DNA from: Phaeosaccion multiseriatum
Taxonomy: Eukaryota > Protista > Ochrophyta, other classes
Assembly (NCBI GenBank): GCA_965112735.1
Contig: OZ218951.1
Span: 3,968,001 to 4,032,000 of the forward strand
Length of the DNA stretch: 64,000 bases
Reading direction: 5' to 3'
The stretch's first letter is position 1. Every line of letters begins with the position of its first letter. The notes under the pieces are model-generated. The model made no database searches, was not told the origin of the DNA, and was given only the letters and a program-made list of their open reading frames with translations. This document shows positions 23,871 to 58,970 of the stretch, one piece after another. A program made the position numbers and the translations under genes.

Positions 23871-26800
23871 ATGATCGCCTCCTCGCTGAGGACTCAGGCA
23901 AGGTCAAGGATTCGGAGGAGGGCCAGATCAACTGTAGAAGGAGGAGGAGGCAAGGGAGGCGGGCTCTCTCGTTGGCAAGAGGATGTGCCTCCAAGATTTG
24001 GGGCGTGCTTTTCCTCTTTCTCTCCATTCTCCTCCGGTGCTGCCACTGTAGATGCCGACCGATGTTCCTCATCTCCGTCCACTAGACCAGGGCCGGTACC
24101 TACACCATCAGTGCGGGGCTTGGTGGGACGGCGATCCTATTCGGGTGCAAGGAGAGGCGGGGGTGACGAAGAAGGTATAGTCTCCCGCCATCTACGGCCA
24201 CTACCCCCTCAGCAGCAGCAGACGCGGCAGGTCTTTTCTTGGTTCCTTAAGAAGAATCCGGAGTTGGAGGCAGCGAATGAAAGGAGGGCGGAGCTCGTGC
24301 CGTCGGACGAAGAGAGAGAGGCAGAGAGGAATAAGCGGCTGAAGAGAATCCAGTCCCTGAGTGAGCAGATGGAGTACGTGGAGGACCAGGTAGACGACCA
24401 GCATGAGGACTGTGTGGAGGTGAGCGTAGTGAGTAAGAGTGACAAAGGGTACAAGGCCTTCAACGCCGCCTTGAAGCTGGTGAGTGAGTGAGGGAGGCAG
24501 GGAGGGAATGATGAGGGAGGGAGGGAAGGAGGGAGGGAGGTAAGGAGAGATTGAGTGAGTGAGTAAGTGAAGGAAGGATGGAGGAAAATTGAGTATGAGT
24601 AAGTGAGGGAGGGAGGGAGGGAGGGAGGGAGTGCAGAATCGGCTTGATACCGCTGCAACCTGCACTGTGTCAATGAATGAATGGATGTTGCTTTTGTTCA
24701 TATCACTCTCCTGTGGGTTCACCTGCATCCCCCCCACCCCCCCCCACACACGCACATTCACGAGCAGTTCCTCAAGTCCAGTCCGGGTGCCCTGAGCGGT
24801 TTCCGAGACTGCGTTTCTCTGGACCCCTCCTGCTGCATGGCGCACTGCATGATCGGCATGATGCAGCTGCTCACTGTGGCGGTGCCCAGAAATGACAGAG
24901 AGCTTGTGCAGGTGGGCTTAAGAGGAAGCGGTTGGGATCAAGGAAGGAGAGGAGGGGGAGGAGGAGGAGAGGGGAGGAGGAGGAAGAGGAGGAGGAGGAG
25001 CAGGAGGAGGAGGAGGGTGGAGGAGGAGGACCGGGGGGGGGAGGAGGAGGAGTGGGGGAGGAGGAGGACGAGGAGGAGGAGGAAGAGGAGGGGGGGGGGC
25101 AAGGGAGAAGAGGAGAGGTGGAGGGGGAGTGGGGAATTGGCAGGGACGGCCACGGTGTTCCATCCTTTGTCAAGCAGACGGAGCGGCGTAGGCGGATACT
25201 TCAGATGCAAACGCAGACTCGACTATGCGTGTGTGTCCCCTCACCCTTCCTCCCTTTCCCTCCTCCCTCCGATCACCCCCCCCCCCCTCATCCCTGCGGC
25301 ACCTGACAGCTTGCACCTTCCTGTCCAATTGCTTTGCTTTGCCTCCCCTCCACCCCCGCCAGAGCCTGTCAGCTGCGTCCTCCTTCTGCAAAGAGTACAG
25401 GGACGCCTTCGGACGCATTGCCCCTCCGAGAGAGAGAGCCTTCACCGCTGCGCTGCAAGTGAGTGCGTTCGTGCCCCCGCCCCACCCCACCCCACCCCAC
25501 CCCACCGCACTCCGCCCCATCACACATCAATTTATCAAACCGCTTCCATCCTCGTACCGCCGCTCCTTATCACGCACTTGCCCTTACTCGCTCTACTCCA
25601 CCCTCCCCTGCCTCCCCTCCCCTCCCCTCCCCTCCCCTCCCCTCCCCTCCCCTCCCCTCCCCTCCCCTCCCCTCCCCTCCCCTCCCCTCCCCTCCCCTCC
25701 CCTCCCCTCCCCTCCCCTCCCCTCCCCTCCCCTCCCCTCCCCTCCCCTCCCCTCCCCTCCCCTCCCCTCCCCTCCCCTCCCCTCCCCTCCCCTCCCCTCC
25801 CCTCCCCTCCCCTCCCCTCCCCTCCCCTCCCCTCCCCTCCCCTCCCCTCCCCTCCCTTCCCCTCCCCTCCCCTCCCCTCCCCTCCCCTCCCCTCCCCTCC
25901 CCCTCGCAGCACTGGATGGAGGGGCATTGGCTGCTCGGCGTCCAGTCCCTCGAACGCTACCTTCTACACGCCCCCACCGACGTGCTTGCCGTGCGTCTTG
26001 TCCACGAGGCCTTACTCCTCCTTGGCATGACGAGGCCCGCGAGGGATGTCGTGGCCAGGAGTATGCAACGATTCACAACGGGTGCGTGCGTGCGTGCGTG
26101 CGTGGGTGGGTGCGTGCGTGGGTGTTGGATGAGTGCGTGCGAGTGTGGGTGCGTGGGTGTTCTCCCCCCCTAAGCTCTTGCTCCCTCCCTCTCTCCCTCT
26201 CTCCCTCTCTCTCTCTCTCCCTCTCTCCCTCTCCCTCCCTCCCCTTTAGCGGAGTGGGCGTGGCCGTTGATGGAGAGCATGGGGGCTATGGGTCTCGCTC
26301 ACCTCAATGAGTTCGTAGCGGCGGAGACAGGAGCCTCTAAGGCCATGTACAACGCTAAAGACCCTTGGGCCATGTATGCACAGGCAGTAGCTTACGAGAA
26401 GCAGGTGGGTGTTGATGTGGGTGCGGGTGTGGGTGTGGGTGCGGGTGTGGGTGTGGGTGTGGGTGTGGGTGCGGGTGTGGGTGTGGGTGTGGGTGTGAGT
26501 GAGTGAGTGGGTGGATGGATGGGTGGATGGGTGGATGGGTGGGTGGATGGGTGGATGGGTGGATGGGTGGATGGGTGGATGGATGGGTGGGTGGGTGGGT
26601 GGATGGGTGGGTGGATGGGTGGATGGATGGGTGGGTGGGTGGATGGGCGGGTGAGGTCCTGCGTGCGTGGGTCCCTTCGATTCTCGTATCTTGCTCTGCT
26701 GCGCTGACCCCGTCCGTCCCCCTCCCCCTTCTCTGCTCCTATGGATCTTCTCTTCTCTTCTTCCAAAACACCTCCTCCTCCTCCTCCTCCTCCTCCTCCT

Positions 26801-28975
26801 CCTCCTCCTCCTCCTCCTCCTCCTCCTCCTCCTCCTCCTCCTCCTCCTCCCTCCTTCTCTCCTGCTGCCTTGTCAGGCCCGCTCGAGCGAGACGGTGGGC
26901 ACTCTGAAGAGCTATCAGAAGCACTGGCTGCAGGCCTGCGTGCCCGTGCGCAGCAAGATTGCATGGCACTACGGGAGGGCCTTGTTGGAGAGGGGGCAGG
27001 TGGGGGATGCGAGGAGGGCTTATGACGCTTACCTCAAGCCTTGTGTGGATGACAAGGACGAGGACATCACGCCCTCCACGCTGGCCGGTGAGTGAGTGAG
27101 TCAGTCAATCTGTCAGTCAGTCAGTCAGTAGTCAGTCAGTCAGTCAGTGAGTGGGTGAGTCAGTCAGTCAGTCAGTCAGTCAGTCAGTCAGTCAGTCAGT
27201 CAGTCAGTCAGTCAGTGAGTGGGTGAGTCAGTCAGTCAGTCAGTGAGTGAGTGGATGGGTGGGTGGGTGAGTGAGTGAGTGAGTCAGTCAGTCAGTCAGT
27301 GGGTGGGTGGGTGAGTGGGTGAGTCAGTCAGTCAGTGGGTCGGTGGGTTGATGGGTGGGCGGGTGAGTGAGTTAGTGAAAGTGAGTGAGTGGGTGAGTGA
27401 GTGAGTGGATGAGTGAGTAAGTGTATGGGTGCGTGAGTGAGTGGGTGAGTGAGTGAGGGAGTGAGTGAGTGAGTGGTGGGACCGAATGAGCTGGTGAGTT
27501 CTTACAGCTCACACCGTCCACCGGACACATCTGACACCGCAACAACAACATCAAACATCCTACAGACGCCACGAGCCTGCTGTGGATGTTCGATCTCTGC
27601 GGCGAGAGTCACCACGTCGGGCTACAGAGGTGGGAGGCACTGGGCAGCTACTGGGGCCGCTTCGACTACCTGCAGCTCTCCAGTGTGCATGATATACACG
27701 CAATGATGGCGTATGCGACGCTTGCCAATATGGGGCAGGAAGGGGCGATGGCGGACGAGTGGAGGGGCAAGGCGGAGCAGCTGCTAGAGAGGATGCACAT
27801 CTCCGTGTGGGGCAACTTCCACCGCGGCAGTCATATGGGCAGCGACAGTAGCAGCGGTAGCGTGGAGTCTTATGGGGGAAGAGAGGCAGGAGGGGGAGGG
27901 GAGGGTACCGGCGACATGCGGAGGAGGGGGATGGGGGGGGGGGAGGGCAGGGGGGGGAGGAGGCACGCCAGGGACCCTTTGAACGACGTGAAGGTATTTC
28001 CACTGCTCAACAAGATGGATGCCACTCGGCACAGCCTTTACGTGCCGTTGGAAGAAGAAGGACAAGAGCAAGAGCAGGGGGCGGCGGCAGGGGCAGGGGG
28101 GGGGGGAGGGAAGGCGACAAGGCGGTGGAGGAGCGGGAGCGGACAGGAGGCGGAGAATAGAGCCGAGCTCAGAGCCAGGGCTGAGCAGGCATTGAAGAAG
28201 GCAGAGGAGGAAGAGGAGAGGAAAGGTGGCAGTGGACGACAACACGGCGGCGGCTCTCCTCCTCACCCGTACCCAGGCATACCCATCAGCTCCTTCCCTC
28301 CGGACCGGGCCTACAGCACCCCTCCGCTGGCCTCTGACGACGCTTGGGTCATGCGACACATTGGCATACCCGTGTGCGAGGCGTTGCTTGCCTACCGCAG
28401 CGACGAGTTGGACAAGGCTGTTGACTTACTGTTGAAGATGAAGCCGCATTGGAGTGCGTTGGGGGGTGACGTGGCACAAATCGAGGTGCTCGAGTTTACG
28501 CTCATGGTGGCGAGTATGGAGGTGCGTGTGTCTGTGAGTGTGTGTGTGTGTGCGTGTGTGCGTGTGTGTGTGAGTATGACCATACGATCCATGTGGAGCA
28601 GTGGAGAGGCTTTGCGTGTGTGGCGCTTTCTCTCTCGCACCACCCTCCCGCACTGTCTGCTGCCTTGTCTCGTTCTTTCTCGATTGCAAGTGGCGCTTTG
28701 TCTCTCCCACTCTCTCCCACACACACTCTCCCACCCCTGTCTCGTTGTTTGCCTCTCCTCTCTTTTTCTTCTTCTGTGCCATGCAGGTCTCCGATCGGAG
28801 CCTGGCCCTTGGGCTGGTGGAGGATTGGGTGTGGAGGAAGCCCAACGGGGGGCAGGGCTGGTGCCTGTATGCCTTGTTGCTCGAGTGGGAGGGCCTGTAC
28901 GACAAGAGTCTTGAGGCCAGGGAGAAGGCTTACAACATGGGCATCGGACAGGGCGGGCATAGGGGAGAGCTTTAG
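23871..28975 (+). CDS. TTC38-like tetratricopeptide-repeat protein, multi-exon
   Basis: Spliced pieces [68 protein letters not shown] and [13 protein letters not shown] follow the order of TTC38-family motifs (DAWAVHAVAH, HNYWHWAL, DASSLLYRL, LGGSNAQRDV). Internal exon edges are approximate. Confidence 0.75.
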
Positions 28976-35929: not shown

Positions 35930-36712
35930 ATGGCAGAGCGACAGCTCAAGATAAAAGTGGGGGTGTGCACCAGGTGAGAGAAGGGTAAGTGGGACTCCTT
36001 TTCTTCCATTCGCTCCTCCCTAACCCACCCCGACGTACTTGCGCTGCACCAGGCTAGGCAAGGAGGTGGCGGCCTATGAGAAGGAGGCCAAGGACAACGA
36101 GGCAAAGGTTCAGAAGATGCGGGATGACGAAAAGGACCCTTACGATATTAGAAAACAAGAGGTGGGTGGAAAGCCTGCGCACGCAACCGTCCCACTTTCT
36201 CTCTCGCGCTCTCTCTGCCCGCACCCCTCCCAGTCTGTCGATAGCCCTGATATCCCCTTCCTGCCTTTCGCCCACTACCCTCCCCACGTCTGATTAAGCT
36301 CTTTGTGGGGCAGCTCTCCTTTCCACCCCTTCTGATCCAATCTCTTTCATGGGGCTGCAACACGCTGGTCCAAAGACGTTGGCAGTCCAAAGGGGGGATG
36401 TCCCTGCTACTACACTACTCCCGCTGCTGTCTTGCACCGCTGACTTTGGCCCTGGACTTTGACTGCTCCTACGCCCCAAAACGTAATGAACGGCGCCCCC
36501 CCTTGCTCTCCTCCTCCCACTCGGCGTGGGCTGTGGTCGTGGAGCAGGAGGTACTCCAAGAGAGCTGCATGATGATTCCGGACTCCAAGGCTCGGCAGCA
36601 GGATGCGCTAGAGGACCTCAAGAGCTTTCTCGACACAAGCGAGGCCGAGCTCAAGGGCAGCGGAGACTTGTTGAAGACGGCAAAGCAGCTCGTGGAGGAA
36701 GGGGGCGTGTGA
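35930..36712 (+). CDS. TBCA: Tubulin-specific chaperone A (cofactor A), 3 exons
   Basis: MAERQLKIKVGVCTR|LGKEVAAYEKE...DPYDIRKQE|EVLQESCMMIPD matches the TBCA pattern. Exons 35930-35973, 36053-36161, 36548-36712. Confidence 0.92.
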
Positions 36713-37619
36713 GGGAGAGGGGAGAAGGGGGAGGGCAGACGGAAAGAAGGCGGCGGTCTCCCGGTCACGCACTCAACGTCCAACGATTGATTATTGGCCC
36801 AAATTCCATCGAGGGGACGGATGACGGAGGCAAAGCAAACAAGCCCTCCATACATCTTCATGGGTTCGTTGACGAGGGTGATGGAAGGACGCTCGCTCCT
36901 CTTCAATGGCGCAGCGCAGTTGAATTAGTGCTTCTTATCTCTTCCCATCTCTTCCTCGGAGGCGGTGGTATTTAGCTGCAGCGTTTGCAGAGAGGCAGCA
37001 CAGCATCTCTGTCCTCCATCTCTCGGACTCTCTGGAGCGGTGCTGGTGGGGCAAATGGGGCGTCGAGCGACAGGGTGAGGCGACAGAGAGCAGAGGGGCA
37101 TAAGCGGCGCATTCAGTCGCAAGGGGCAGGGAAGCTCAGCACAACAACAGACAACAGACAGCGGGACCCCTTGCAAGTACTAGTACTGTAGAGAAGGGAG
37201 AGAGAAAATGAATCACACTTCTCAGCCGCGCGTGGCCACCAGCAGTTGTAGAGACGTCCCTCGTCCCAGCCTCAGGCAGGCATGATGTCATTGATGAGGT
37301 GGGTGGTGGGGGCTCGGGGGGTTGGATGTATTGACTTGAGTGAGTAAGTATATTTGGGTGCAGTCTCTTGAGATGATCATCTGTGACTCTGGATGAAGAG
37401 GCCACGCAGATGGTGATAAGCGCGCCGCGTTTTTCGTTTTGTTTTGTTTTGGTCTCGAAATTGGAGGATTCCCGCATTTCTCAGTGTGTTGAAGTATCCC
37501 CGAGAGCTGGTTGAAGCTCAAGTTTGAGGGCCCGGAAAAATTAACTAACTCGCTTTACTCAAATTTGTGTGTAATTGCCGCATTGCGGAGGAGGAGGAGG
37601 AGGAGGATGAGGAGGAGGA

Positions 37620-37691
37620 GCATCCTTTTGCTAGGCTGACAGCTATCCACTGAATATTCACGGGGGTAGCTGTCAGCCTACAAAAGGATGC
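37620..37691. repeat. 72-bp near-perfect palindrome
   Basis: GCATCCTTTTG(C)TAGGCTGACAGCTA...TGAATATTCA...TAGCTGTCAGCCTACAAAAGGATGC. Confidence 0.9.
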
Positions 37692-37974: not shown

Positions 37975-38102
37975 GTCGACCCCTGACGCACTATCGCCCA
38001 CATTCTCGATAGCGCGCTATTGGTTAGCGGATAGCGGATCGGCTGGCGCCAGCGATAGCGGATAGGCGCCAGGCAGGGGTGGGCGAAACGTTACTTTTAG
38101 AC
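37975..38102. mobile_element. Degenerate copy of the small TIR (MITE-like) element seen at 55012-55126
   Basis: GTCGACCCCTGACGCACTATCGCCCACATTCTCGATAGCGCGCTAT...GGCTGGCGCCAGCGATAGCGGATAG aligns with 55012-55126. Confidence 0.7.
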
Positions 38103-38353
38103 GTTCCTTTTTTTTTTTCTTTCCCTTTTTTTCCCCTTTCTTTCTTCACTGTCATGGACCTGCATGAGTAAATGAGGGGCGAGCACAGCGCTTCCGGACT
38201 TGCATCGACCTGCATGAGTAAACGAGAGGGCGATAAACAAGAAGGTGCATATGGTTAGCCTCTTGAGAAACCAACTCTTGCGCCAGTACACCACCATTAG
38301 GGGGAGGAGTTTAAGCCTTCGGCGGGTGAAGGGGGTAGAGGCTTCGTCCAGGA

Positions 38354-39367
38354 ATGCCAAGCATGCAGCGACCTAATCTTGAGCAAGCGCTGTCGGTGTA
38401 CAATTTCGAGTACCTTACGCCTGAAACGAAAGAGTGGACGGCCTACTGTGAGCAAAATCATCTGTCGGAGATTCAGGCAGAAGCTTTTGCAGTGTATCCT
38501 TCGACTCAGTCCCGTGCCGACACGCTTAGAGCTACGCGGTACCGCTTGCCGGTCTACTTTGGAGGTGATATGAGCAGCATGTACGACGCCCACAAACTGG
38601 AGAGCGTGCATGGCTACAGCAAGACGGACGTGCCTGCGCCGAGACCGGGCCATCGTCGCCCGCAGGTGATCATCGCGGCCCCCGTGTGGTGTTCGCGTGC
38701 ACCGGACATCAAGTTTCACGTGATTCATGCGTACGGGGTGAACCTTGAAACACCACACACCGCTGATTATTCGGTCATGGTGGATGCCACGGGGAATTTG
38801 CGTGTCGGCGAGTACAAGCTTGCGGTGCACTCACTACTGTCAGGCATTGTGGAGGCTACCCAGACCATCATTGCCCGAAACGCCGGCGGTGATTCTTGCC
38901 CAGCGCAATGGACCTTACGTATGCCCATGATTGGAATGGGTGCCTACCTCTCGTCCGTGCTCGCTGAGGACAGAGTCCAGGCAATGCGGGTATTTGCCGA
39001 GTGTCTCACAAACGCAGCCGTCGAGCTTTTGGGAGCTGCTGTTCGCCTCCAGATCTGCGATTTTACAGGATGCAGCCTTGCAGACGGGGATGTGGTTGGA
39101 TGGGAGGTGTGTAAGGGGCGTACAGAGGGAGACTTGTTCAATGTCACACCAGAGCCGGGGCTGATCATGGTGAATGCGTGGGATGATGTGAGCTTCATCG
39201 GAAACGGCGGCCAAAGAGACGACACGATTGATGGGTATATGATCGCCGGACACGGTCCTGGCGGTAAGCTCGTAAATTGTAGCTATTTGCACAATCCATG
39301 CTTTCTACCCGCCCTCTTACGCGAGGACTCGACGCCGTCGGACAGTTGCGCGGAAGTGCTTTCTTGA
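38354..39367 (+). CDS. Intronless 337-aa protein, putative divergent macrodomain (MavL/Larg1/DUF4804-like) ADP-ribosylhydrolase
   Basis: Uninterrupted, non-repetitive ORF with motifs HVIHAYG (38717), LRMPMIGMGAY (about 38915) and VNAWDDVSFIGNGGQRDDTIDG (39170). The ORF is solid; the family call is from motif memory. Confidence 0.6.
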   Translation: MPSMQRPNLEQALSVYNFEYLTPETKEWTAYCEQNHLSEIQAEAFAVYPSTQSRADTLRATRYRLPVYFGGDMSSMYDAHKLESVHGYSKTDVPAPRPGHRRPQVIIAAPVWCSRAPDIKFHVIHAYGVNLETPHTADYSVMVDATGNLRVGEYKLAVHSLLSGIVEATQTIIARNAGGDSCPAQWTLRMPMIGMGAYLSSVLAEDRVQAMRVFAECLTNAAVELLGAAVRLQICDFTGCSLADGDVVGWEVCKGRTEGDLFNVTPEPGLIMVNAWDDVSFIGNGGQRDDTIDGYMIAGHGPGGKLVNCSYLHNPCFLPALLREDSTPSDSCAEVLS

Positions 39368-39675
39368 GACAAACGGCGACCACGCTCGTGAGAAGAGCAC
39401 CCACGCCACTTCTGCAGACTCTCGCGTATGCCGGACCGGAAGTACTCATCTGCTGCTGTGATGTATTACCAGGGAACAATCGCCCCCTGACAAGGTTCTG
39501 AGCGACCCAGGTTCCAGGTTCTGGCCAACCCTAGCCGGCCTGGTTCCAGGTTCTGGCCATGAGTGCTTGCAAAGACGCATGACCCGGCGGGAGCTTCGGT
39601 GCAGCCTTAGGCAAAGGGCACGCGACCATCACACGATATGTAGTGTATAGTGAGGGGTGAGAAAAAATTATGGGT

Positions 39676-39901
39676 GTCTAAAAGTAGTGGCTCACCGCCC
39701 CGGGGAACTTAGCCCCCGAGGTCGTATCCCTCCGATGCGTGCTTGTCAGTTCTCCCCATCGGAATAAAGTTGATACCAGCCAGGATCCTGTGGCGAATGA
39801 TTCAATCTTTCGTGTCGGGCCCGCTGGAGCACAACGGCCAATCGCCGCCGAATGACGCAAACAGCCCTCGCATAAGCCCTCATGTCCAAATGTTCGTGCC
39901 C
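39676..39901 (-). repeat. About 220-bp dispersed repeat, copy 1 (inverted relative to 58751-58962)
   Basis: The reverse complement aligns end to end with 58751-58962, with scattered substitutions and small indels. Confidence 0.9.
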
Positions 39902-40041: not shown

Positions 40042-41336
40042 ATGGAGAAACAGGGAGGTAACGAAGGGGGAGGGGACAGGGGGGAAGATGGGATAGCATC
40101 AGTGGGCGGCGTGGCAAAGGAGACCAAGCTGGTGAGTGAAGCACCTGAGCCAAAGGAGAAAGAAAGGAAAGGAAATATGTGTTGCCTCACCTCTAACCTT
40201 ACCAAGCCCTCTTGCAGCCTGTGCTCGTCATAAAGGATCGCGTGCTCTTCCCGGGAGGACTGATGCGACTCAGCGTGAGCCGTCCCAAGAGTATCGGCCT
40301 CGTGGAGATGCTTGTCACGAGAGACGGCAACATGTCGGTCAGGCACCCCAACTCCATCGCTCTCGCCATCTTCACCTTGAAGCCGGCGGTGGCCGAAGCG
40401 GAGGAGAGAGAGCAGGGCTTTGGGCCAGGAGGAGTGGCAGAAGCGCGATCGGTAGAGAGTAGGCGAATGGTCACAGGTGCCGACAAGAAGAAGGGTGGTA
40501 GCAGCAGCAGCATCAGCAGCAGTAGCACGTCTTACGGCACATTTCTCGATCGCATCTACAAGACAGGCTGCGCGGCTCAGCTGCTGCAGGTTTCTCGCTC
40601 ACGATCGAGTACGGGGGGAGGGGGCGGGGAGTACACCTACTCTGTGCTGGTGCAGGGTATGGGTCGAGTGCGTCTGGTGGACCAACCATGGGGCGAGAAC
40701 CCCTCCAGCAAGGGTGCGGAGGGCAGGGAGGGCGGTGGCAGTCCCAGCCCCAGCCCCAGCCCCAGCAGCACTTTTCTGGGAGCCCCCCCACTCACTGCTC
40801 GGGTCATGTTTCTCGAGGACCGGGGGTCGCCACACGACGCAGGGGTGAGTGAGGGAGCGCTTGCCGGAGAGGGGGCAGCCAGAGGTGAAGAGGTCGACCG
40901 ACCGACCGACCGACCGACCGAGACACGGCAAGATGATGATACTCGCTTTGTCCGACACCAAGGGAGGCTGGCTGTGGTCAAGCCTCTGTTTCTCTTGCGT
41001 GCGATATATAGAGCTGGGCAGCGGCACCCTAAATCACCTACCTACCTGCCTGACTGCCAACCTACCTGCCTATCTGCCTGTCTGCCTACCTGCCTGCCTA
41101 CCTGTCTACCGGCCGGATTATCCTGCGGTACCTTACCTGCCTGGCGGCTCGGTCGGATGCTGACGGGCAAGCTGACACCCCACCCTTGTTGTCCTCGTCC
41201 TCGTCCTCGGCCTCGGCGTGGCAGGTGCAGGCCCTGACAGTGGCCTTGAAGGACGCAGTCAGGGACCTCGTGGATGCCGTGAATGTGCGCCTCGGTACCA
41301 CTGTAGGTACCGGACCTTCCAGCAACAGCAGTAGTG

Positions 41337-41368
<32 letters not shown>

Positions 41369-43247
41369 CGTAGTAGTAGTGGTCGTGGGGGAAGGAGGGC
41401 AGGGGCAGCAAACAGAGTCTTGAACAGCGGCAGGGGGAGCGGCAGGATGGGAGGAGGAGGAGGAGGAGGAGGACGAGGAGGAGGACGAGGAGGAGCAGGA
41501 GGAAGCAGCGCGGAGCAGCAGCTGCTGCAGCACATTCGAGCGGTGAGCACTCGCGAGCTAATGGACGCGTTGGCTCAGGCCAGTCCTGCGGCCCTCGCTG
41601 ACTTGCTGATGGGGCATCTCAACGCGCCTGTGGAAGGCAAGCAAAGGGTGCTGGAGGAGCTTGAGCTAGCGGCAAGGGTGAGGATGGTGCTCCACATCGT
41701 CAAGGAGCAGGCCGAGGTGCGTGGGAGGGAGGGAGGGAGGGGAGATAAAGGTGGGAGAGATGGAAATGTATAAATGTATAGGAGGGAGATGGTGCGGAGA
41801 GAGGTCGAGAAAAGGATAGGAAGAGAGGGCAGATGGAGACGGAAAGATGAGAGAGGGAGGAGGACATCCACTTCAAGTACGGCGTCTCTCCCCTTTAGAG
41901 AGGGAGGGTATGTCCTTCGATGGCCTCTCTGTCCTGTGAGAGGATCCCCTGCCGTTCAATCATGGCCCTGCGGCGGCTTTCCCCTTCCCTTCCCTTCTCC
42001 TTTGCTTTCCCCTTCCCTTCTCTTCCCCCTCTGCTTTCCCCTTCCCTTCCCTTCCCTTCCCCTCTGCTTTCCCTTTCCCTTCCCTTCCCCTCTGCTTTCC
42101 CCTTCCGTTCCCTTCCCTTCCCCCTCTGCTTTCCCCTTCCCCCTCTGCTCCTCCTCCTCATGTCTCTCTCTCTCCTCTCTCTGTGTGTGTTTTTGGGGGG
42201 TGCCTCACCTCCATCCACTGCCATATACTGCCCACAGGTGCTCACCCTGGCCACCAAGATCGACAAGGAGGTGGCGAGCAGCATCAGCTCGAGGCAGAGA
42301 GAGTTCTATCTGAGGCAGCAACTCAAGGCCATACGAAACGAGCTCGGGGAGGGACAAGGGGGCAGGACGGGGCGGGGGGAGGGGGAGGGGGAGGGAGAGG
42401 GGGAGGACGGAGGAGACATGGCTGAGCTGCAACAGATGCTCGACGACGCTGGACTGTCTGCAGAGGTGAGTGGAAAGGTGGGTGGGGGTGGCTACGGAGT
42501 GCGCAGTAGGCAGTTCCAAGTAGGTGGGCAGAGAGGGTGCAGTTCCAAGAAGATGGGTAAAGGGTGGGCGTTGGTAGTTCGAAGTATATGATGTCTTTTC
42601 TTCTCAGCCCCCCCCCCCCCCTTCACCCCTGCGTGGTTGGTGCTTCAGGCTGCCAAGGTAGCGGCGCGGGACATGCGTCGTCTGAAGCGTATGCAGCCCT
42701 CGCAGCCCGAGTACACCGTCATTCGCAACTATTTGGAGGTCTTGGCGGATCTGCCTTGGAGGGACGACAAGCACCAGCGCCAGCACAAGCAGAACAAGGA
42801 GAAGGGAGGCAGTAGTAGCAGTAGTAGTAGCAGCAGTAGCACCACCAGCAAGGATAATGTCGGTGAAGAAGCAGAAAGGGGCGAAGCCGCTCCTCCTCCT
42901 GCACAACAGGCACAGCAGGAAGGAGGCTTTATTGAGGTGGCGGAGGGGGAGGGGCAGGGGGAGGGTGGGGCAAGGCAGCGGCAGCAGCAGGAGGGGGAGG
43001 AGAAGGAGGACAGAGGGTACGACATGAGGAAGGTGCAGAGACGGCTTGATGCAGACCACTTCGGTCTAGACAAGGTACGGGCAGGGAGGAAAAGAGCTTG
43101 ATTGGTTAGTCTGTGTAGAGGGAGGCAGGGAGGGGGAGAGAGGGAGAGAGAGAGGGAGGGAGGGAGAGAGAGGAAGAGAGAGAGAAAGGGAGAGAGAGTT
43201 TCATCGCATGACTAACGTCATAGCTTTTCTCCTCCTCCTCCTCCTCC

Positions 43248-43287
<40 letters not shown>

Positions 43288-43298
43288 CATCATCGTCG

Positions 43299-43331
<33 letters not shown>

Positions 43332-43334
43332 CTG

Positions 43335-43365
<31 letters not shown>

Positions 43366-43436
43366 TGCCATCCTCATCATCCTCATCATCGTCATTGCCA
43401 TCGTCATCATCATCATCATCATCATCATCATCACTG

Positions 43437-43473
<37 letters not shown>

Positions 43474-43511
43474 TGCCATCCTCATCATCCTCATCATCGT
43501 CATTGCCATCG

Positions 43512-43554
<43 letters not shown>

Positions 43555-43599
43555 CATCATCATCATTGCCATCATCATCATCCTCATCATCATCATTGC

Positions 43600-43640
<41 letters not shown>

Positions 43641-43643
43641 CTG

Positions 43644-43679
<36 letters not shown>

Positions 43680-43707
43680 CTGTCATCATCATCATCATCA
43701 TCATTGC

Positions 43708-43749
<42 letters not shown>

Positions 43750-44529
43750 TGCCACAGGTCAAGAAGCGCATCGTGCAGTCCATCGCTGTTCGCGCTCTCC
43801 GCGGGGAGTCGAGCGAGGTACGTGTGCACAGCCCCGCAAGAAACACGGCACCACACGAGCCCTCTCTCTTTCCGCCCTGTCCCCCCCTGTCCCTTTTTGT
43901 GTCCCCCCCCCCCCCCCCCTCTCTCTCCCTCTCTCTCTCCCTCTCTCTCTCCCCTGTACGTATCGCAACTGCGATATCCGTCTTGTCCTGTCCCTTTCGC
44001 TCACACCACGCACGCACATACACACACTCATACACTCTTACTCTCTCTCTCAAGACACAAATACGCTCTCTCTCACACACACAACACATCCACGTTCTTT
44101 CTCTCTCTCACGCACACGCACACGCACACACACGCAGGGCTCTATTCTGTGCTTGGTGGGCCCCCCCGGGGTGGGCAAGACTTCACTGGGCAAGAGCGTG
44201 GCGGCCGCGGTGAGTGACGAGCCCCAGGGGGGGGACACTACTCACACTCACGCGCTCACCCACTCACCCACTCACTCACTCACTCACTCACTCACTTACT
44301 CACTCACTGAATCATTCTCTCACTCACCCACTCACTCATTTCCCCCCCCATTCACTCACTCACTCACTCACTCACTCACTCACACGCACTCACTCACTCA
44401 CTCACTCACTCACTCACTCACTCACTCACTCACTACTCTCTGCTTTACGTTGCGGTCTTTACCGGGCCCGACTCCTCTCCTCCCCTCCCCTCCCCTCCTC
44501 TCCCCCACCTCCCTACGTACACACACACA

Positions 44530-44594
<65 letters not shown>

Positions 44595-47500
44595 ACAGCT
44601 CCACCGCCCGTTCCAACGCCTGGCCCTCGGCGGTGTATCGGACGAGGCAGAAATCCGAGGGCATCGGCGGACCTACATCGGCGCCATGCCCGGCTCTGTG
44701 CTTGCCGCCCTCCGTAAGGCCAAGAGCCGCTCACCAGTGGTGCTGCTTGACGAGGTGGACAAGCTGGGGGAGGGCGTGAGGGGCGGGGGGGGGCCGGCCT
44801 CGGCGTTGCTGGAGGTGGGTGGGTGCATGGCAGTGGATGGCAGTGGATGGCAGTGAGTAGGTGGGTGGAGGGGGGGGGCGGCCTCGGCAGTGCTGGAGAT
44901 GGGTGGGTGGGTGGCAGTGGATGGCAGTGGGTAGGTGTGGGTGGGTGTGGGGTGGGTGGATGGCAGTGGATGGCAGTGTTTGGGGTGGATGGCAGTGAGT
45001 AGGTGGGTTTGGGGGGAACCGACTTCGGCGTCACTGGAGGTGGGTGGATGACGTAGATGACAGTGGATGGCATTGGATGGGTGAGTGAGTGGGTGGGTGG
45101 ATGGATGGGTGGTTGGATGGCAGCCACCGAACACACCTCCCCTCCCCCCCCCCCAACGTACCACATCCCTCCCTCTTCCCCTACGCCCCACCCACCCATC
45201 CTCCCACCCATCCTCCCACCCCCCGCAAACCCCCCAGGTGCTGGACCCTGAGCAGAACTGCACCTTCACGGACCATTTCCTCAACGTGCCCTTCGACCTT
45301 TCCTCCGTCCTCTTCGTGGCCACCGCCAACACTTTGGACACCATCCCTCCGCCCCTCTTGGACAGGATGGAGGTGAGTGAGTGTGTGTGTGTATGGGAGT
45401 GAGTGTGTGTGTCTGTGTGTGTCTGTGTGTGTCTGTGTGTGTCTGTGTGTGTGAGAGGGGGGGGGGGGGTGCAAGGAGAGAGGGCACAAGGAGAGACAGA
45501 GATATAAGAGACAGGAACAAAGAGGAGCGAGCATCACAAGAGAGTAGAGAGAGTAGGCCAAGAAGCTGAAACTGTCACACTGTGACATGACATGACATGA
45601 CGTCACAGGTGATCCACCTGCCGGGCTACACGAGTCAGGAGAAGCTTGCCATCGCCACCCGCTTCATCCTGCCCAAGGTCAGTAAGTCAGTCAGTGAGTG
45701 AGTGAGTGAGTGAGTGAGTGAGTCACTTGGGCCACAGAATCCATACTCTTACTGTAAAGCGTTCGACACGGCGACGTTCGACATTCGAAGCTCGAATTTT
45801 TAAACTCGAACTGCAACTGCAAACTGCTTCTGAAGGTGATGCGCGAGTGCGGCATCACAGAGGAGCACCTGCTGCTGCCTTCCAGTGCCATCCTCCAGGT
45901 GGCGCAGTCCTACACAAGAGAGGTAAGCAAGTGGGTGGGTGGGTGCGTGAGTGCGTGGGGGTGTGGGTGGGTGCGTGTGGGTGTGTGCGTGTGGGTGTGT
46001 GCGTGTGGGTGTGTGCGTGTGGGTGTATGACTCTTTGTCGCTCTCTCGTCGTTTTCACCCCCTAATGCTCTACTCTCTGTGCCCCCTCGTGATCGCCCCT
46101 TGACCCCACCCCCACTCGCACGTCATGTGGTGATACAGGCCGGTGTTCGCCAGTTGGAGAGAGAGTTAGCGACGATCTGCAGACACGTTGCGTACATGGT
46201 CGTGGCATGGAGAGAGGACGGCACTGGTAGGGAAGCCTCTTCGGCCAATGCTGCCAATGGGAGTGCCGAGGGAGAAGGAGGAGGTGAGCGTGAGTGAGTG
46301 AGTGGGTGAGCGAGTGAGTGAGTGCGCGGGTGTGGACAGAAGAGAGAGGAGAGAGAAGAGGACAGAGCGTAGAAGGCAGCTGAGAGAGGAAAGGAGAGAG
46401 GGTGAAGCAGCGTCGAGCTCTCTCTCTCTAGTGTGTGTGTGTGTGTGTATATCCTCTGCGCTCACTCACTCTCCCATGTTATTCACTGACGCTCCCTCCC
46501 TCCCTCCCCCTCCCTGTGCCCCTGCGTACAGAGGCGGTGTACACGTACGCTTCGGTGAGTATCGGTGGTGGCGGTGACGCTGATGCTGATGCCATGAATA
46601 GCAGCAACAGCGGCAGCAGCGGGGATAGCGTGGTTCTGCCCCAGGCCCAGGCAATCCCCCTGCCCCTATCCCATGCAATGCCCTTCCCTCGAGTGGTGGT
46701 GACGGCTTCACTGCTGCAGGCGGTGCTTGGCCCTCCTCGTTTCCAGTCTGAGGTGGCGGCGAGGGTTTCCATTGCCGGGGTGTGCACGGGGCTGGCCTAC
46801 ACGCCCCAGGGGGGGGAGCTCCTCTTTATCGAATGCAGCAGTCATGGGGGCAAAGGGAAGGGGGAAGGAGGCAAGTTGACGCTGACGGGCAAGCTCGGAG
46901 AGGTTATGAAAGAGAGCGCTCTCATCGCCCTGACTTTCATCCGCAGCAACGAAGCGGAGGTCAAGCATTGCCTGGGCCTGGGCCCAATCCCCGAGGCGGC
47001 CAGTCCTAGTTGTGGGGAGACGACAACACATGGTGGGGAGCCTCCGGGGGAGCTGCTCTTCGACTACAGTGCCACCGATATCCACCTCCACGTGCCGGCG
47101 GGGGCAGTGCCCAAGGACGGGCCCTCTGCGGGAGTGTCCATCGCGTGTGCGCTCCTCTCTATGATGACGGGGCGCTGTGTGCCTCCTTGCCTCGCCATGA
47201 CGGGGGAGGTGACGCTGCGGGGACTTGTGCTGCCTGTAGGGGGTGTCAAGGACAAGGTGAGGGGGGGTGGGGTGGGGTGGGAGGGGGTGGGGTGGGGTAG
47301 GGCGTTGTGTTTGTTGTGTTGTGCTGTGCTCTTTTTCTCGTTCACTGCGCACCCGACCGCCCCTCCGACTGCCTCCGCCTTCACCTCACTCACTCACTCA
47401 CTCACTCACTAACCTCACTCAGTCACTCACTCACTATTCACTCACTCACTCACTCACTCACTCACTCACTCACTCACTCACTCACTCACTCACTCACTCA

Positions 47501-47808
47501 CTCACTCACTCACTCACTCACTCACTCACTCACTAACCTCACTCACTCACTCACTCACTATTCACTCACTCACTCACTCACTCACTCACTCACTCACCCA
47601 CTCACTCACCCTCCCCTTGAACAGGTGATTGCAGCGCACCGCGGGGGCATCAAGCGAGTGATCCTCCCCCTCCGTAACGAGCGTGACCTTGAGGACATTC
47701 CGCCCTTGGTAAGAAAGGAGATGGCCTTCACCTTTGTCTCCTCCCTTTTGGAGGTGTTTCAGGCGGCCTTCCAGCCCAGCCCAAGCCCAAGCAACAGCAG
47801 TCACATGG

Positions 47809-47845
<37 letters not shown>

Positions 47846-47984
47846 TGGGCAGCTCCCTGCAGAGAGAGAGCGCACCCCCTTGGGGCCTGCTGCTGCTTCT
47901 GCTGCCCGTATGAGTGCAGCCAGGTGTGAAGGCGCTCTGTGTGTGTGCGACTCTGCCGCCCCCGTGCTGAGGAGCAGTCTGTGA
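40042..47984 (+). CDS. Lon protease, peroxisomal type (LONP2-like), multi-exon
   Basis: L|[14 protein letters not shown] (LON_N), [38 protein letters not shown]|VKKRI, Walker [27 protein letters not shown], catalytic PKDGPSAG and GGVKDK, C-terminus ...LRSSL* (PTS1-like). Confidence 0.93.
43248..43750. repeat. About 500-bp imperfect (ATC)n microsatellite in a Lon intron
   Basis: Visible trinucleotide tract ending just before the acceptor at 43757. Confidence 0.95.
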
Positions 47985-49424: not shown

Positions 49425-52359
49425 TTACACAGCTCCGTGTGTGAGCATGACCTCTGCCACTCTCCTGAAGCCCGCGATATCAGCTCCTGCCTGCAGGTCT
49501 CCCCTTGTGTTGTACTCCTTCGCCGTCTGTTTCACCTCGTCTGTGCCGAGTAGCAAGACAGACAAGAGACAATATATACACGAAGAGAGAGAGGGGGGTG
49601 GGTGGGTAATGGAGAGAGGCATGGAGAAAGGGGCATAGAGTCAATAGAGAGTAAACGCCAAGAGAGGAAAGCGGTACAGGACAAAAACGCTCCGGGGCGG
49701 GGTATGACAGGCGGCAAGAAAGCGACGAGCGGAAGGAAGTCATTCTCCAGTGTCGAGGTGAGCTGTCGAGTGACTGTCTAGCAGTAGCAGCCCCTTGACT
49801 GTCAAGGTGAGCTGTCGAGTGACTGTCTAGCAGTAGCAGCCCCTTGACTGTCGAGTCACTGCCCCTTTAAGCCAAACCCTTCCCTCATCCACCCCTCCCC
49901 CCCCTACCCTCGCTCTGACCCATCTCCATATCTATCCCCCCCCCCCCCTCCTCCTCCTCCATCTCCTCCCCGTGACTCACCAAAGATGGCCTGCATCCTG
50001 TCCTTAATGCGTGCCTCCAACATGTCTGCTGTCATGGTCAAGTCTACGCTTGTCTCTGGTCCGCTCACCAACCCTGCTGCAGCCCCTGTGGCCTTGTGCG
50101 GGGCAAACATGATTCCTCTCTTCCTGAACACTGCCTTGGCCTCCTTCGAGCAAGGCTGACAAGAGGAAGAGAGGGAGAGGGAGAGAAGAGAGAGAAAGGA
50201 AGGGAGGGGGGGGGGGAGGTGAAGAGAGAGGGGGAGGAGGGGTGGAGGAGAGGAGAAAAGAAAAGGGAGAATGACGTCACGATACGACGGGTCATGTACG
50301 TGTGCGTCCCCACTGACATATGTTACTCTCCCCCCCCCCCCACCCCTCTCTCTTTGACACCATCTCACTGACTGACCTGGTTGCCCCCCTCGATGACCCC
50401 CATGCATCCGTTGTCAGCAAGGCTTGTTGCTGTGGCGGCGTCGATCTCGTCGCGTTGTGCGCAAGCGAACACCTTTACGAAGGTTTGGCGAGGGGCGAGT
50501 GAGTGGGTGGGTGAGTGAGTGAGAGGGACAAGAGGGAGGGATGGTGGGAGGGAGGGAGGGAGAGAGAGAGAGAGAGATGTACATCACAGCAACAGCAGCT
50601 TTGACTTTGACTCACGAGATCGCAGGGGATGTTGAAGATATTCTCGGGATCGTTGTACTGCGCCGTTGTGGAGGCGATGATGTAACGGCCCAGCCTCGCT
50701 CCTCGCTGCGCAGAGGGAGAGGGGCGGGGGGGGGGCAGAGCACTGCTGAGTGGCAGGCAGGCGGCAGAGGGCAGAGGGCTGTGGCCACCAGAGGCGCGAC
50801 ACACGCAGGCAGGCAGCCGGGCGCCGATAATAGGGGCCCACAGGAACAGCGATACCCAAGCAGAGGGACAAGCACGTGTATGACCTCCTCCTCCTCCTCC
50901 TCCCCCTCCTCCTCCTCCTCCTCCTCCTCCTCCCCCTCCTCCTCCTCCTCCTCCTCCCCCCCTCCTCGTCCTCCTCCTCCTCCTCCTCCCCCTCCTCCTC
51001 CTCCTCCTCCTCCTCCTCCTCCTCCCCCTCCTCGTCCTCCTCGTCCTCCTCCTCCTCCCCCTCCTCCTCCTCCTTCTCCTCCTCCTCCCCCTCCTCCTCC
51101 TCCTCCTCCTCCTCCTCCCCCTCCTCCTCCTCCTCCTCCTCCTCCTCCTCCTCCTCCTCCTCCTCCTCCTCCTCCTCCTCCTCCTCCTCCCCCTCCCCCT
51201 CCTCCTCCTCCCCCTCCTCCTCCTCCCCCTCCTCCTCCTCCCCCTCCTCCTTCTCCTCCTCCTCCCCCCTCCTTCTCCTCCTCCCCCTCCTCCTCCTTCT
51301 CCTCCTCCTCCCCCTCCCCCTCCGTCCTCCTCCTCCTCCTCCTCCTCCTCCTCTCACCTCTGCCTTGATCTTGAGGATGGTCTTCATCTTGGATTGATCA
51401 ATACCCGCCGACTCATAAATGTGGCCACTCTGATCCGTAAAAGTCAACGGAATGGCGCCATACTCCAACAGCTTCTCTGCCACCGCCAAGGCCACCTTGC
51501 CGCTGCCCGTCACGAGACACCGCTTGCCCTTGAGCCCCTCGTTCTTATCTCTCAACATGGCGTCGGCGAAGTGCACCACGCCCGACCCAATGGCCTGCGG
51601 ATAGAGATGCGTTCCTCCCCACAACACGCCCTTGCCCCTCTGCGCAATGTGTTCATTGATCCGCTTGTACTGCCCGTACAGGTAGCCAATCTCGCTGGGG
51701 CCGCATCCGAAGCCGAAGGCAGGCGAGTCCAAATCGGGCCCAATGTATTTGGAAAGCTCCGTCATGAACGACTGACAGAAGCGCTGAATTTCGGCCTCGG
51801 ACTTGTCGTGCGGGTTAAAGTCGGCCCCTCCGACGGCGGCCCCCAGACTGCAGCCCGAGAGCGCGTTGCTGAAGACGGTGTCGAGTCCCTGCGCCTTCAT
51901 GAGGCTCATGTTGACGTTGCCGGAGAAGTGCAAGCTCCCCTCGTAAGGCCCTAGGGCACTCGAGTACTGCACTCGGAAACCCCTGTTTCGCGTATTTTGT
52001 GTGTGTTTTGTGTAGTTTGTGTTGTGTTGTTGTGTTTGATGCGTGGGGGGGGGGGGGGGGTTGAGTTGTAAGACGGTTACATTTGGGACCACACGACATG
52101 ATGGTTAGTCACGTGATGACATGACGGTTACAATGCATAAGGAGTTCGGGACTGCCGGGTACAGAGTACAAGGAGTTAGGGGATCACACTTCACCCCTGC
52201 CACTACCCGGCAAGGAGTGAGTGTCTTCCTGAGTCTTCCTCACTCTCTTCCTACCTGTTCATGCGGCTGTTGCCGTGGTCGTCGAGCCAGGCCACGCGGA
52301 ATTGAATGGCACGCTCGGGCTCGATGAGCTTTGGTTTGGGTTTAGGTTTGTTCGTTTGG

Positions 52360-55011: not shown

Positions 55012-55126
55012 TCGACCCCTGACACGCTATCGCCCACTTTCTCGATAGCGCGCTATCGGCCGCCGGCTGATAGCGGATAGCGCGCCGGCTGGCGCCGGCG
55101 ATAGCGGATAGCGTGTCAGGGGTCGA
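55012..55126. mobile_element. 115-bp MITE-like element with perfect 20-bp terminal inverted repeats
   Basis: TCGACCCCTGACACGCTATC (55012-55031) and GATAGCGTGTCAGGGGTCGA (55107-55126); related copies at 37975 and 54269. Confidence 0.75.
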
Positions 55127-58750: not shown

Positions 58751-58962
58751 GGGCACGAACATCTGGATATGCGAGCTTATGCGCGGGCTGTTTGCGTCAT
58801 TCGGCGGCGTCTAGCCGTTGCGCTCCAGCGGGCTCGATATGATAGATCGATTCGCCATAGGATCCTGGCTGGCATCAACTTTATGCCAATCGGGAGAACG
58901 CATCGGAGGGATACGACCTCGGGGACTAAGTTCCCCGGGGCGATGAGACATTACTTTTAGAC
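58751..58962 (+). repeat. About 210-bp dispersed repeat, copy 2
   Basis: Aligns with the reverse complement of 39676-39901. Confidence 0.9.
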
Positions 58963-58970
58963 AATCATAG

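Follow-up and report, generated by a model that had tools for sequence, protein, structure and literature searches.

The 64,000-nucleotide stretch of Phaeosaccion multiseriatum DNA analyzed here (positions 3,968,001 to 4,032,000 of contig OZ218951.1, assembly GCA_965112735.1; hereafter the window) carries an intact, intronless gene at positions 38354-39367. We consider it probable that its product is a single-domain protein of a distinct, giant-virus-centred branch of the MavL/Larg1/DUF4804 (ADP-ribosyl)hydrolases, and that the gene was captured from a giant virus. The open reading frame (ORF) begins with an ATG codon:

38354..39367, + strand: intact intronless gene for a single-domain, MavL-like macrodomain protein as predicted (337 amino acids plus stop; from the ORF, the alignment of relatives, the AlphaFold2 model and Foldseek)

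A preliminary description of this DNA had reported an intronless ORF with three motifs. Its coordinates were exact and all three strings are present: HVIHAYG at residues 122-128 (38717-38737), PMIGMGAY at residues 191-198 (38924-38947) and the 22-residue stretch VNAWD...TIDG at residues 273-294 (39170-39235). The members of the family described below, 16 in a first alignment and 60 in a second one, aligned to the protein between about residues 8 and 323 with no splicing required, so the gene is complete and intronless. Its standing as the only intronless gene of the window holds so far, as the other long ORFs are exon fragments or low-complexity read-throughs, with the exception of one unexplained ORF at 27586-28914. 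The higher use of A/T-ending codons is real but modest: the GC content at third codon positions (GC3) was 0.623 (210/337) in the gene versus 0.74 (757/1023) in the neighbouring host exons, sampled as the Pfam-matched stretches of the myosin, AAA, LON and GDH exons (Fisher p = 5.7e-5).

The AlphaFold2 model of the protein, calculated on the family alignment, reached a pLDDT of 93.9 and a pTM of 0.93. All 26 PDB matches found by Foldseek at E<=1e-3 corresponded to MavL, to the Drosophila proteins CG3568 and CG2909 or to Larg1/Lpg0081, which are the four proteins of this arginine-specific class with solved structures, and the next matches were non-significant (MAF1B, E 1.3e-2; MACROD2, about 0.06; Deinococcus PARG, 0.1). 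By this model the fold is closest to those of the solved macrodomains of the MavL/Larg1/DUF4804 class. A fold unrelated to macrodomains, held up beforehand as the contrary outcome, was not found: only MavL-class members were matched significantly. The top structural match overall, and the best viral one, was the ChoanoV1 protein A0A5B8IFM7 (E 1.5e-14, TM 0.69/0.76), and a Sylvanvirus 'DUF4804 domain-containing protein' (A0A3G5AIH6) was matched at E 4.4e-8. At the sequence level, a profile of the 60 family sequences matched the solved MavL chains with E values of 1.1e-7 to 1.7e-7 along about 155 positions covering both loops discussed below, and Larg1/Lpg0081 weakly (E 0.016). The profile and the Foldseek results together bear out the earlier assignment to the non-canonical, MavL/Larg1/DUF4804-like macrodomains. 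Pfam models of this class were hardly reached. The long relative P0026 scored 25.5 bits against PF16062 ('ADP-ribosylhydrolase MavL-like'), below the cut-off of 27; PF24754 ('MavL') was touched by 4 and PF16062 by 1 of the 60 members, all only at E<1, and the window protein matched neither model even at E<=10, falling short of the Pfam gathering cut-offs.

Five conserved motifs were delimited in the protein from the alignments. The two predicted loops were assigned by profile alignment and the published residue roles (PMC10951314), the other three motifs by their column shares:

38543..38563, + strand: family-specific N-terminal motif, residues 64-70; R64, P66, V67, Y68 and G70 conserved at 81-96%
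38717..38749, + strand: motif at residues 122-132, including HVIHAYG; H125 invariant, N130 and E132 each at 94%
38924..38947, + strand: predicted diphosphate-binding loop, residues 191-198
39170..39235, + strand: predicted catalytic/distal-ribose loop, residues 273-294
39275..39298, + strand: family-specific C-terminal motif, residues 308-315; N308, S310, L312, H313 and N314 at 81-96%; P315 invariant in the 16-sequence alignment

Residue correspondences with MavL were established from the alignment of the profile to the MavL chains, a map of profile positions onto the window protein and the same residue roles (PMC10951314). The following pairs come from the profile alignment:

P191: MavL P220
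G194: MavL G223
G196: MavL G225
Y198: MavL F227
D277: MavL D315
N284: MavL N322
T291: MavL T331
D293: MavL D333

The diphosphate loop is N-terminal to the catalytic loop, and both align to MavL in that order, in agreement with the preliminary description. The profile alignment to MavL starts downstream of the motif at residues 122-132, and no MavL counterpart was assigned to this motif or to those at residues 64-70 and 308-315. Replacement of F227, D315, D323 or D333 strongly reduces the activity of MavL (PMC10951314), and three of these four residues have window counterparts (Y198, D277 and D293). Compared with the class signature of the diphosphate loop, [V/I/L]xGxGxGx[F/W/Y] (PMC10951314), the window protein has G194 and G196 (each conserved at 98%) and Y198, with M192 at the position of the first glycine. 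The class signature of the catalytic loop is WDxx[S/A]xPGN[D/E][F/Y][F/W/Y] (PMC10951314); W276, D277, S280, G283 and N284 fit it and I282 takes the proline position. Beyond the asparagine, a G285-G286 pair stands in place of the acid and a conserved aspartate, D289, is found four residues after the pair. Conservation in the family was 100% for D277, 96% for N284, 96% for G285, 98% for D289 and 93% for D293. Judging from these alignments, the family keeps the catalytic-loop signature in its first half and appears to have rebuilt the second one throughout. The earlier reading is to be corrected on this point, the acidic and aromatic part of the signature being absent. Of the 38 columns conserved at >=80% in the 59 other members, the window protein matches the family in 35. 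Since neither the Pfam cut-offs nor the full catalytic-loop signature are reached, the family appears to be a new variant branch of the known class and not a member of Pfam DUF4804.

A phmmer search against 1.84 billion representatives yielded 249 clusters of homologues, defined at 50% identity, at E<=1e-3 and 146 at E<=1e-10. The best of them was only about 40% identical to the window protein. It had been called an orphan, which is right in that nothing closer than this is on record and wrong in that it belongs to a family of 249 clusters. The members were found mainly on compact contigs resembling giant viruses, and every relative with long enough flanks lay in intron-free, ORFan-rich, compact DNA of giant-virus type, with neighbours that include a B-family DNA polymerase (PolB), pol X, XPG, a pox-like kinase, an mRNA triphosphatase and RING proteins. 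In IMG/VR, three of the four loci with relatives were giant-virus metagenome-assembled genomes (GVMAG contigs). The gene family is thus carried by Nucleocytoviricota, as the GVMAG contigs, the structure matches in ChoanoV1 and Sylvanvirus and the compact contigs indicate. A two-motif pattern scan across 185,579 species genomes of bacteria and archaea revealed no relative, so that, of the viral or bacterial derivation suggested at the outset, the giant-virus source is supported by the contigs of the relatives and the bacterial source has no support. The C-terminal motif (residues 308-315) was one of the search patterns in both the IMG/VR and the prokaryote scans.

Several long members of the family are fused to other domains. 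NADAR, an eraser of (DNA) guanine ADP-ribosylation (PMC11668277), is present in five of them and an endonuclease/exonuclease/phosphatase domain in two; a cytidylyltransferase-like domain, an OTU domain, a Ulp1 protease domain and a protein kinase domain occur in one member each. These fusions tie the family independently to ADP-ribose biology and, weakly, to ubiquitin-like modifiers. Proteins P0079 (from Fimicolochytrium jonesii), P0037, P0051, P0074 and P0077 are 690-850 amino acids long and combine an N-terminal macrodomain with a C-terminal NADAR, that is, two different ADP-ribose erasers in one chain. The PADLOC models of defence systems gave nothing for the window protein and a marginal match for P0037, restricted to its NADAR part.

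In a neighbour-joining tree of 134 domain sequences, delimited with a profile hidden Markov model from the 60-sequence alignment, the window protein paired with P0016 at 80% bootstrap. This partner comes from a short, uninformative contig (L009, ERR5429322). Like the contig of P0017 (L012, SRR24605825), it is about 2 kb long, has a 600-700 nt non-coding 3' flank and a GC content of 56-58%; these two contigs of the nearest relatives look more like transcripts or cellular loci than like dense viral DNA. Their flanks showed no similarity to the window, hence they offer no evidence of synteny. Another relative is found on a virus-like contig with 70% GC (L003; JAWVHC010005236.1 of GCA_040384225.1), where the macrodomain homologue has a GC3 of 0.92 and which also carries PolB, pol X and an aquaporin-family gene. 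The PolB of this contig had no close relative in IMG/VR, so its viral nature is argued from gene content and density only; it could stem from a giant virus with an exceptionally high GC content or from an endogenous element.

The gene is surrounded in the window by repeats and genes of the host. A GDH exon was 68-71% identical to the GDH of Discosporangium, Undaria, Ectocarpus, Chrysoparadoxa and Tribonema, which identifies the host as an ochrophyte alga near brown algae and agrees with the algal genome assumed beforehand. Genomes of the brown-alga type are rich in inserted giant-virus DNA (PMC11890097, PMC12993054). The gene stands by itself in the roughly 3.5 kb that separate an exon of the TBCA gene from the LON gene, with the following features around it:

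36305..36712, + strand: ORF with an exon of the host tubulin-binding cofactor A gene, the upstream neighbour (Pfam TBCA, E 6.3e-9)
37976..38065, strand not assigned: dispersed host repeat just upstream of the gene, with a copy at 55012-55111 (81% identity; blastn of the flanks against the window)
39669..39901, strand not assigned: dispersed host repeat just downstream of the gene, with a copy at 58751-58969 on the other strand (83% over 233 nt; blastn of the flanks against the window)
40212..47984, + strand: multi-exon host LON protease gene, the downstream neighbour (Pfam LON_substr_bdg, PDB Lon matches, Lon_C)

Host genes were searched one exon-ORF at a time, with no joined spliced model. 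The myosin, LON, GDH and AAA genes are each spread over separate ORFs, and TBCA and a FAD-binding oxidase gave single exon-sized matches. In LON, the N-terminal domain begins at 40212, the Walker-A exon lies near 44.1 kb and Lon_C at 46.4-47.9 kb. A giant endogenous viral element was considered for this region and rejected: the ORF at 38354-39367 is the only one that resembles the nine virus-like or related loci compared, and its neighbours are host TBCA, the exon of a FAD-binding oxidase and LON. Since the window has no further match to the virus-like loci, the gene is a single retained gene and not part of an integrated viral genome.

The flanks contain other short repeats. A 23-nt inverted repeat (37907-37929/39752-39774; 87% complementary, 1822 nt between the arms) brackets the gene. 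Transposon ends were rejected as its explanation, as the inverted similarity of the two flanks did not extend further in blastn and the flanks match unrelated dispersed repeats. The repeat is probably due to chance and, less probably, marks a small carrier element. A 32-nt direct repeat with 84% identity (38148-38179/38198-38229) lies 125-205 nt before the start codon, preceded by a T/C-rich tract at about 38100-38145, and a 21-nt direct repeat with 95% identity (39507-39527/39539-39559) lies 140-190 nt past the stop codon. These short direct repeats and the T/C tract may be regulatory or repeat debris.

GGA/TCC trinucleotide arrays occur throughout the window, in introns as well as in coding-looking ORFs (sites include 37587-37620, 41450-41503, 50885-51353, 18531-18711, 26771-26850 and 6204-6298). 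They give rise to long low-complexity ORFs, either rich in P/S/L or, at 43106-44089 on the minus strand, 46% Asp. The kilobase of lowest GC in the window (43001-44000; 0.484, with a strong negative GC skew) is inside the LON gene, beside the Walker-A exon, and overlaps this opposite-strand Asp-rich ORF. As candidate intronless genes, the P/S/L-rich and D-rich ORFs were rejected for their low complexity, and a 523-aa ORF at 43208-44779 as a read-through of a LON exon. The ORF at 27586-28914 (+ strand, 442 aa, GC3 0.67) is of normal amino-acid complexity and matched neither Pfam models nor PDB sequences; either a large exon or another uncharacterised gene may lie here. Scans of the window for Rfam families and for tRNAs were negative.

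What we infer for the protein in terms of enzyme activity, substrate and expression is the following. The loop at residues 191-198 would bind the ADP-ribose moiety of a modified substrate, and D277, N284 and D293 would hold the distal ribose against Y198. The bond between ribose and substrate would be cut by the substrate-assisted attack of water proposed for MavL, and the likeliest outcome would be the removal of mono-ADP-ribose from arginine. D289 may stand in for the acid missing after the GN pair, or else the substrate differs. As to its origin, a giant virus (Nucleocytoviricota) is the likeliest source of the gene, which would have been kept in the algal genome while any other viral DNA was lost, its codon usage drifting part-way to that of the host.

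A number of results weigh against this explanation. The window protein alone found no useful match in Pfam, NCBIfam or the PDB sequences in single-sequence searches, and the TM-scores of its model to solved class members were just 0.45-0.58. It does not conform to the catalytic-loop signature: the acid equivalent to MavL D323/Larg1 E380 is absent, D323 and the next two aromatics being an insertion of MavL with respect to the family, and the acid and the two aromatic positions are occupied by G285, G286 and Q287. Tree support was weak, as the clade joining the window protein with P0001 and P0002, both from a virus context, had only 47% bootstrap. In the 64-kb window, tblastn against the ORFs of the nine virus-like or related loci found no other viral gene, and neither an ADP-ribosyltransferase partner nor a conserved neighbourhood was found beside the relatives examined. 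The exact product of the gene was absent from every assembly in the collection, and look-up of this product gave no expression record. Lastly, members of the family are also found in cellular sources, namely a NADAR-fusion protein annotated on a 700-kb contig of the chytrid Fimicolochytrium jonesii and a sequence in the transcriptome of the euglenid Jenningsia, and transfer in the other direction is conceivable.

The missing transcript or gene call is what would be expected if the gene were a silent relic of a past giant-virus insertion, its ORF intact by recency or luck, unexpressed and of no use to the alga. The repeats on both flanks, the only partly host-like codon usage (GC3 0.62 vs 0.74) and the many inserted viral fragments in genomes of the brown-alga type (PMC11890097) are in line with such a relic. 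However, all 337 codons are open, the strongly conserved columns that are kept include every mapped active-site residue, and the disappearance of other viral DNA from the window implies a time of decay that the gene escaped; the missing record may just mean that data from this organism lie outside the collection. We hold a relic to be possible and on the doubtful side. The rebuilt loop could also belong to a macrodomain with another job, either a reader of ADP-ribose only or an enzyme for a non-arginine target such as ADP-ribosylated nucleic acid or a free NAD-derived metabolite. The acid replaced by the conserved glycine pair, together with two aromatics, is the one that in MavL makes contact with both the arginine and the C1'' hydroxyl, and some relatives are fused to NADAR, which erases ADP-ribose from DNA guanine, while others are fused to nuclease/phosphatase-fold and nucleotidyltransferase-like domains. 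Yet every class member tested, that is MavL, Larg1, CG2909 and CG3568, hydrolysed arginine-linked ADP-ribose only (PMC10951314), the window protein retains the aspartates that would hold the ribose, the asparagine and the blocking aromatic, and D289 could supply the missing acid. Another job thus seems rather unlikely.

The cellular members suggest a further alternative, in which the family is ancestral to eukaryotes, mostly lost and repeatedly taken up by giant viruses, and the algal copy was inherited vertically, its introns lost or never present. The chytrid and Jenningsia members look cellular and the contigs of the nearest relatives, P0016 and P0017, are short and have long non-coding flanks. 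Giant viruses are, however, also harboured by zoosporic fungi (PMC13533422), so the copy in the chytrid could be a viral one. Moreover, nothing above about 40% identity was found although proteomes of brown algae and sister classes are in the collection, every relative with long enough context lies in compact virus-like DNA, and the gene differs from its neighbours, being the only intronless one found among genes split by introns and having a GC3 below that of the host exons. An old eukaryotic gene is, on this evidence, quite improbable. A lone foreign-looking gene with slightly deviant codon usage might finally be viral or other foreign DNA wrongly joined to the algal sequence by contamination or misassembly. 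Against this, the GC content runs unbroken at 0.54-0.56 through the gene and its flanks, both flanks carry, within 400 nt, repeats that recur elsewhere in the window, and intron-split host genes lie on the same contig about 1.6 kb upstream and 0.85 kb downstream. Such an artefact is very hard to believe. Capture from a giant virus of a gene for a MavL-class hydrolase is the explanation that we favour.

If this explanation is accepted, the class gains a sister branch of considerable size (249 clusters), which has its centre in the giant viruses of protists and algae and is represented also in a chytrid, in the transcriptome of a euglenid and in an ochrophyte alga. Further additions are a change of the catalytic loop that is consistent across the family and the repeated fusion of its members to NADAR and to other domains related to ADP-ribose or ubiquitin. 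The gene itself is a clean example of a lone virus-type gene retained in an algal genome after its surroundings were lost, and a concrete candidate for the reversal of ADP-ribosylation in virus-alga interactions. A broader reading would be that arginine-type erasers form a branch of their own in the giant viruses of protists and algae, with a rebuilt catalytic loop and often fused to NADAR or to ubiquitin-like proteases, that these erasers undo the antiviral ADP-ribosylation responses of the hosts, and that the alga captured and kept one of them for signalling or antiviral defence. This would be a eukaryote-virus conflict over ADP-ribosylation not yet described, as the preliminary description had proposed, but near the relatives neither a transferase partner nor a conserved neighbourhood speaks for it; it is speculation and we consider it unlikely.

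Among the known systems compared, macrodomains of the MacroD and PARG types share with the protein the broad macrodomain superfold and gave non-significant Foldseek matches. In the MacroD type, the catalytic loop Nx(6)GG[V/L/I] precedes the diphosphate loop G[V/I/A][Y/F]G, whereas the order is reversed in the window protein, where N274 stands 10 residues, not 6, before the GG pair. The PARG signature is also missing, with no GGG and no QEE in the 337-aa translation. MavL, a macrodomain metaeffector of Legionella pneumophila (PDB 8dmr, 8dmp, 6omi, 8ipw, 8xep), was the top PDB match both by profile (E 1.1e-7) and by fold (E 1.1e-8). The two proteins share the loop order, and MavL G223, G225, F227, D315, N322, T331 and D333 have window counterparts. 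They differ in that identity is about 16% and the TM-score 0.45-0.49, and MavL has D323 with the two aromatics as well as the glycine that comes first in the diphosphate signature and the proline in the catalytic one, whereas the family of the window protein has the extra conserved motifs at residues 64-70, 122-132 and 308-315. Moreover, MavL is a secreted bacterial effector that acts on ADP-ribosyl-ubiquitin and the window gene is an algal nuclear gene of a viral-type family.

Larg1/Lpg0081, also from Legionella (PDB 7w3s, 7wbk), showed fold matches with E 1.5e-6 to 6.7e-6 and the top TMq of the set, 0.58. Its D372 and N379 (PMC10951314) would correspond by spacing to D277 and N284 and its catalytic E380, right after the asparagine and likewise placed by spacing, to a glycine. 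Identity is about 10%, and Larg1 exceeds the window protein in size, having additional helices and a broader variable region (PMC10951314). The Drosophila DUF4804 proteins CG3568 and CG2909 (PDB 8dmu, 8dmt) are the eukaryotic, arginine-specific members of the class (PMC10951314) and were matched by fold with E 6e-8 and 2e-6 and TMq of 0.51-0.56. In contrast to the window protein, they are about 480 aa long and fit both the Pfam DUF4804/MavL-like model and the full catalytic-loop signature; with 10-12% identity, they were undetected by the sequence profile of the family. The proteins of ChoanoV1, Sylvanvirus and Medusavirus resemble the window protein in that they show the class to be carried by giant viruses, and a DUF4804 protein is packaged in the virion of Medusavirus, as found in its virion proteome (PMC6450098). 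They differ in having 10-15% identity to the window protein and are known by predicted structures and automatic names only. The algal gene and its relatives thus widen the range of this enzyme class. They do not amount to a system of a new kind: its fold, its class and the existence of 'DUF4804' proteins in giant viruses had all been recorded before.

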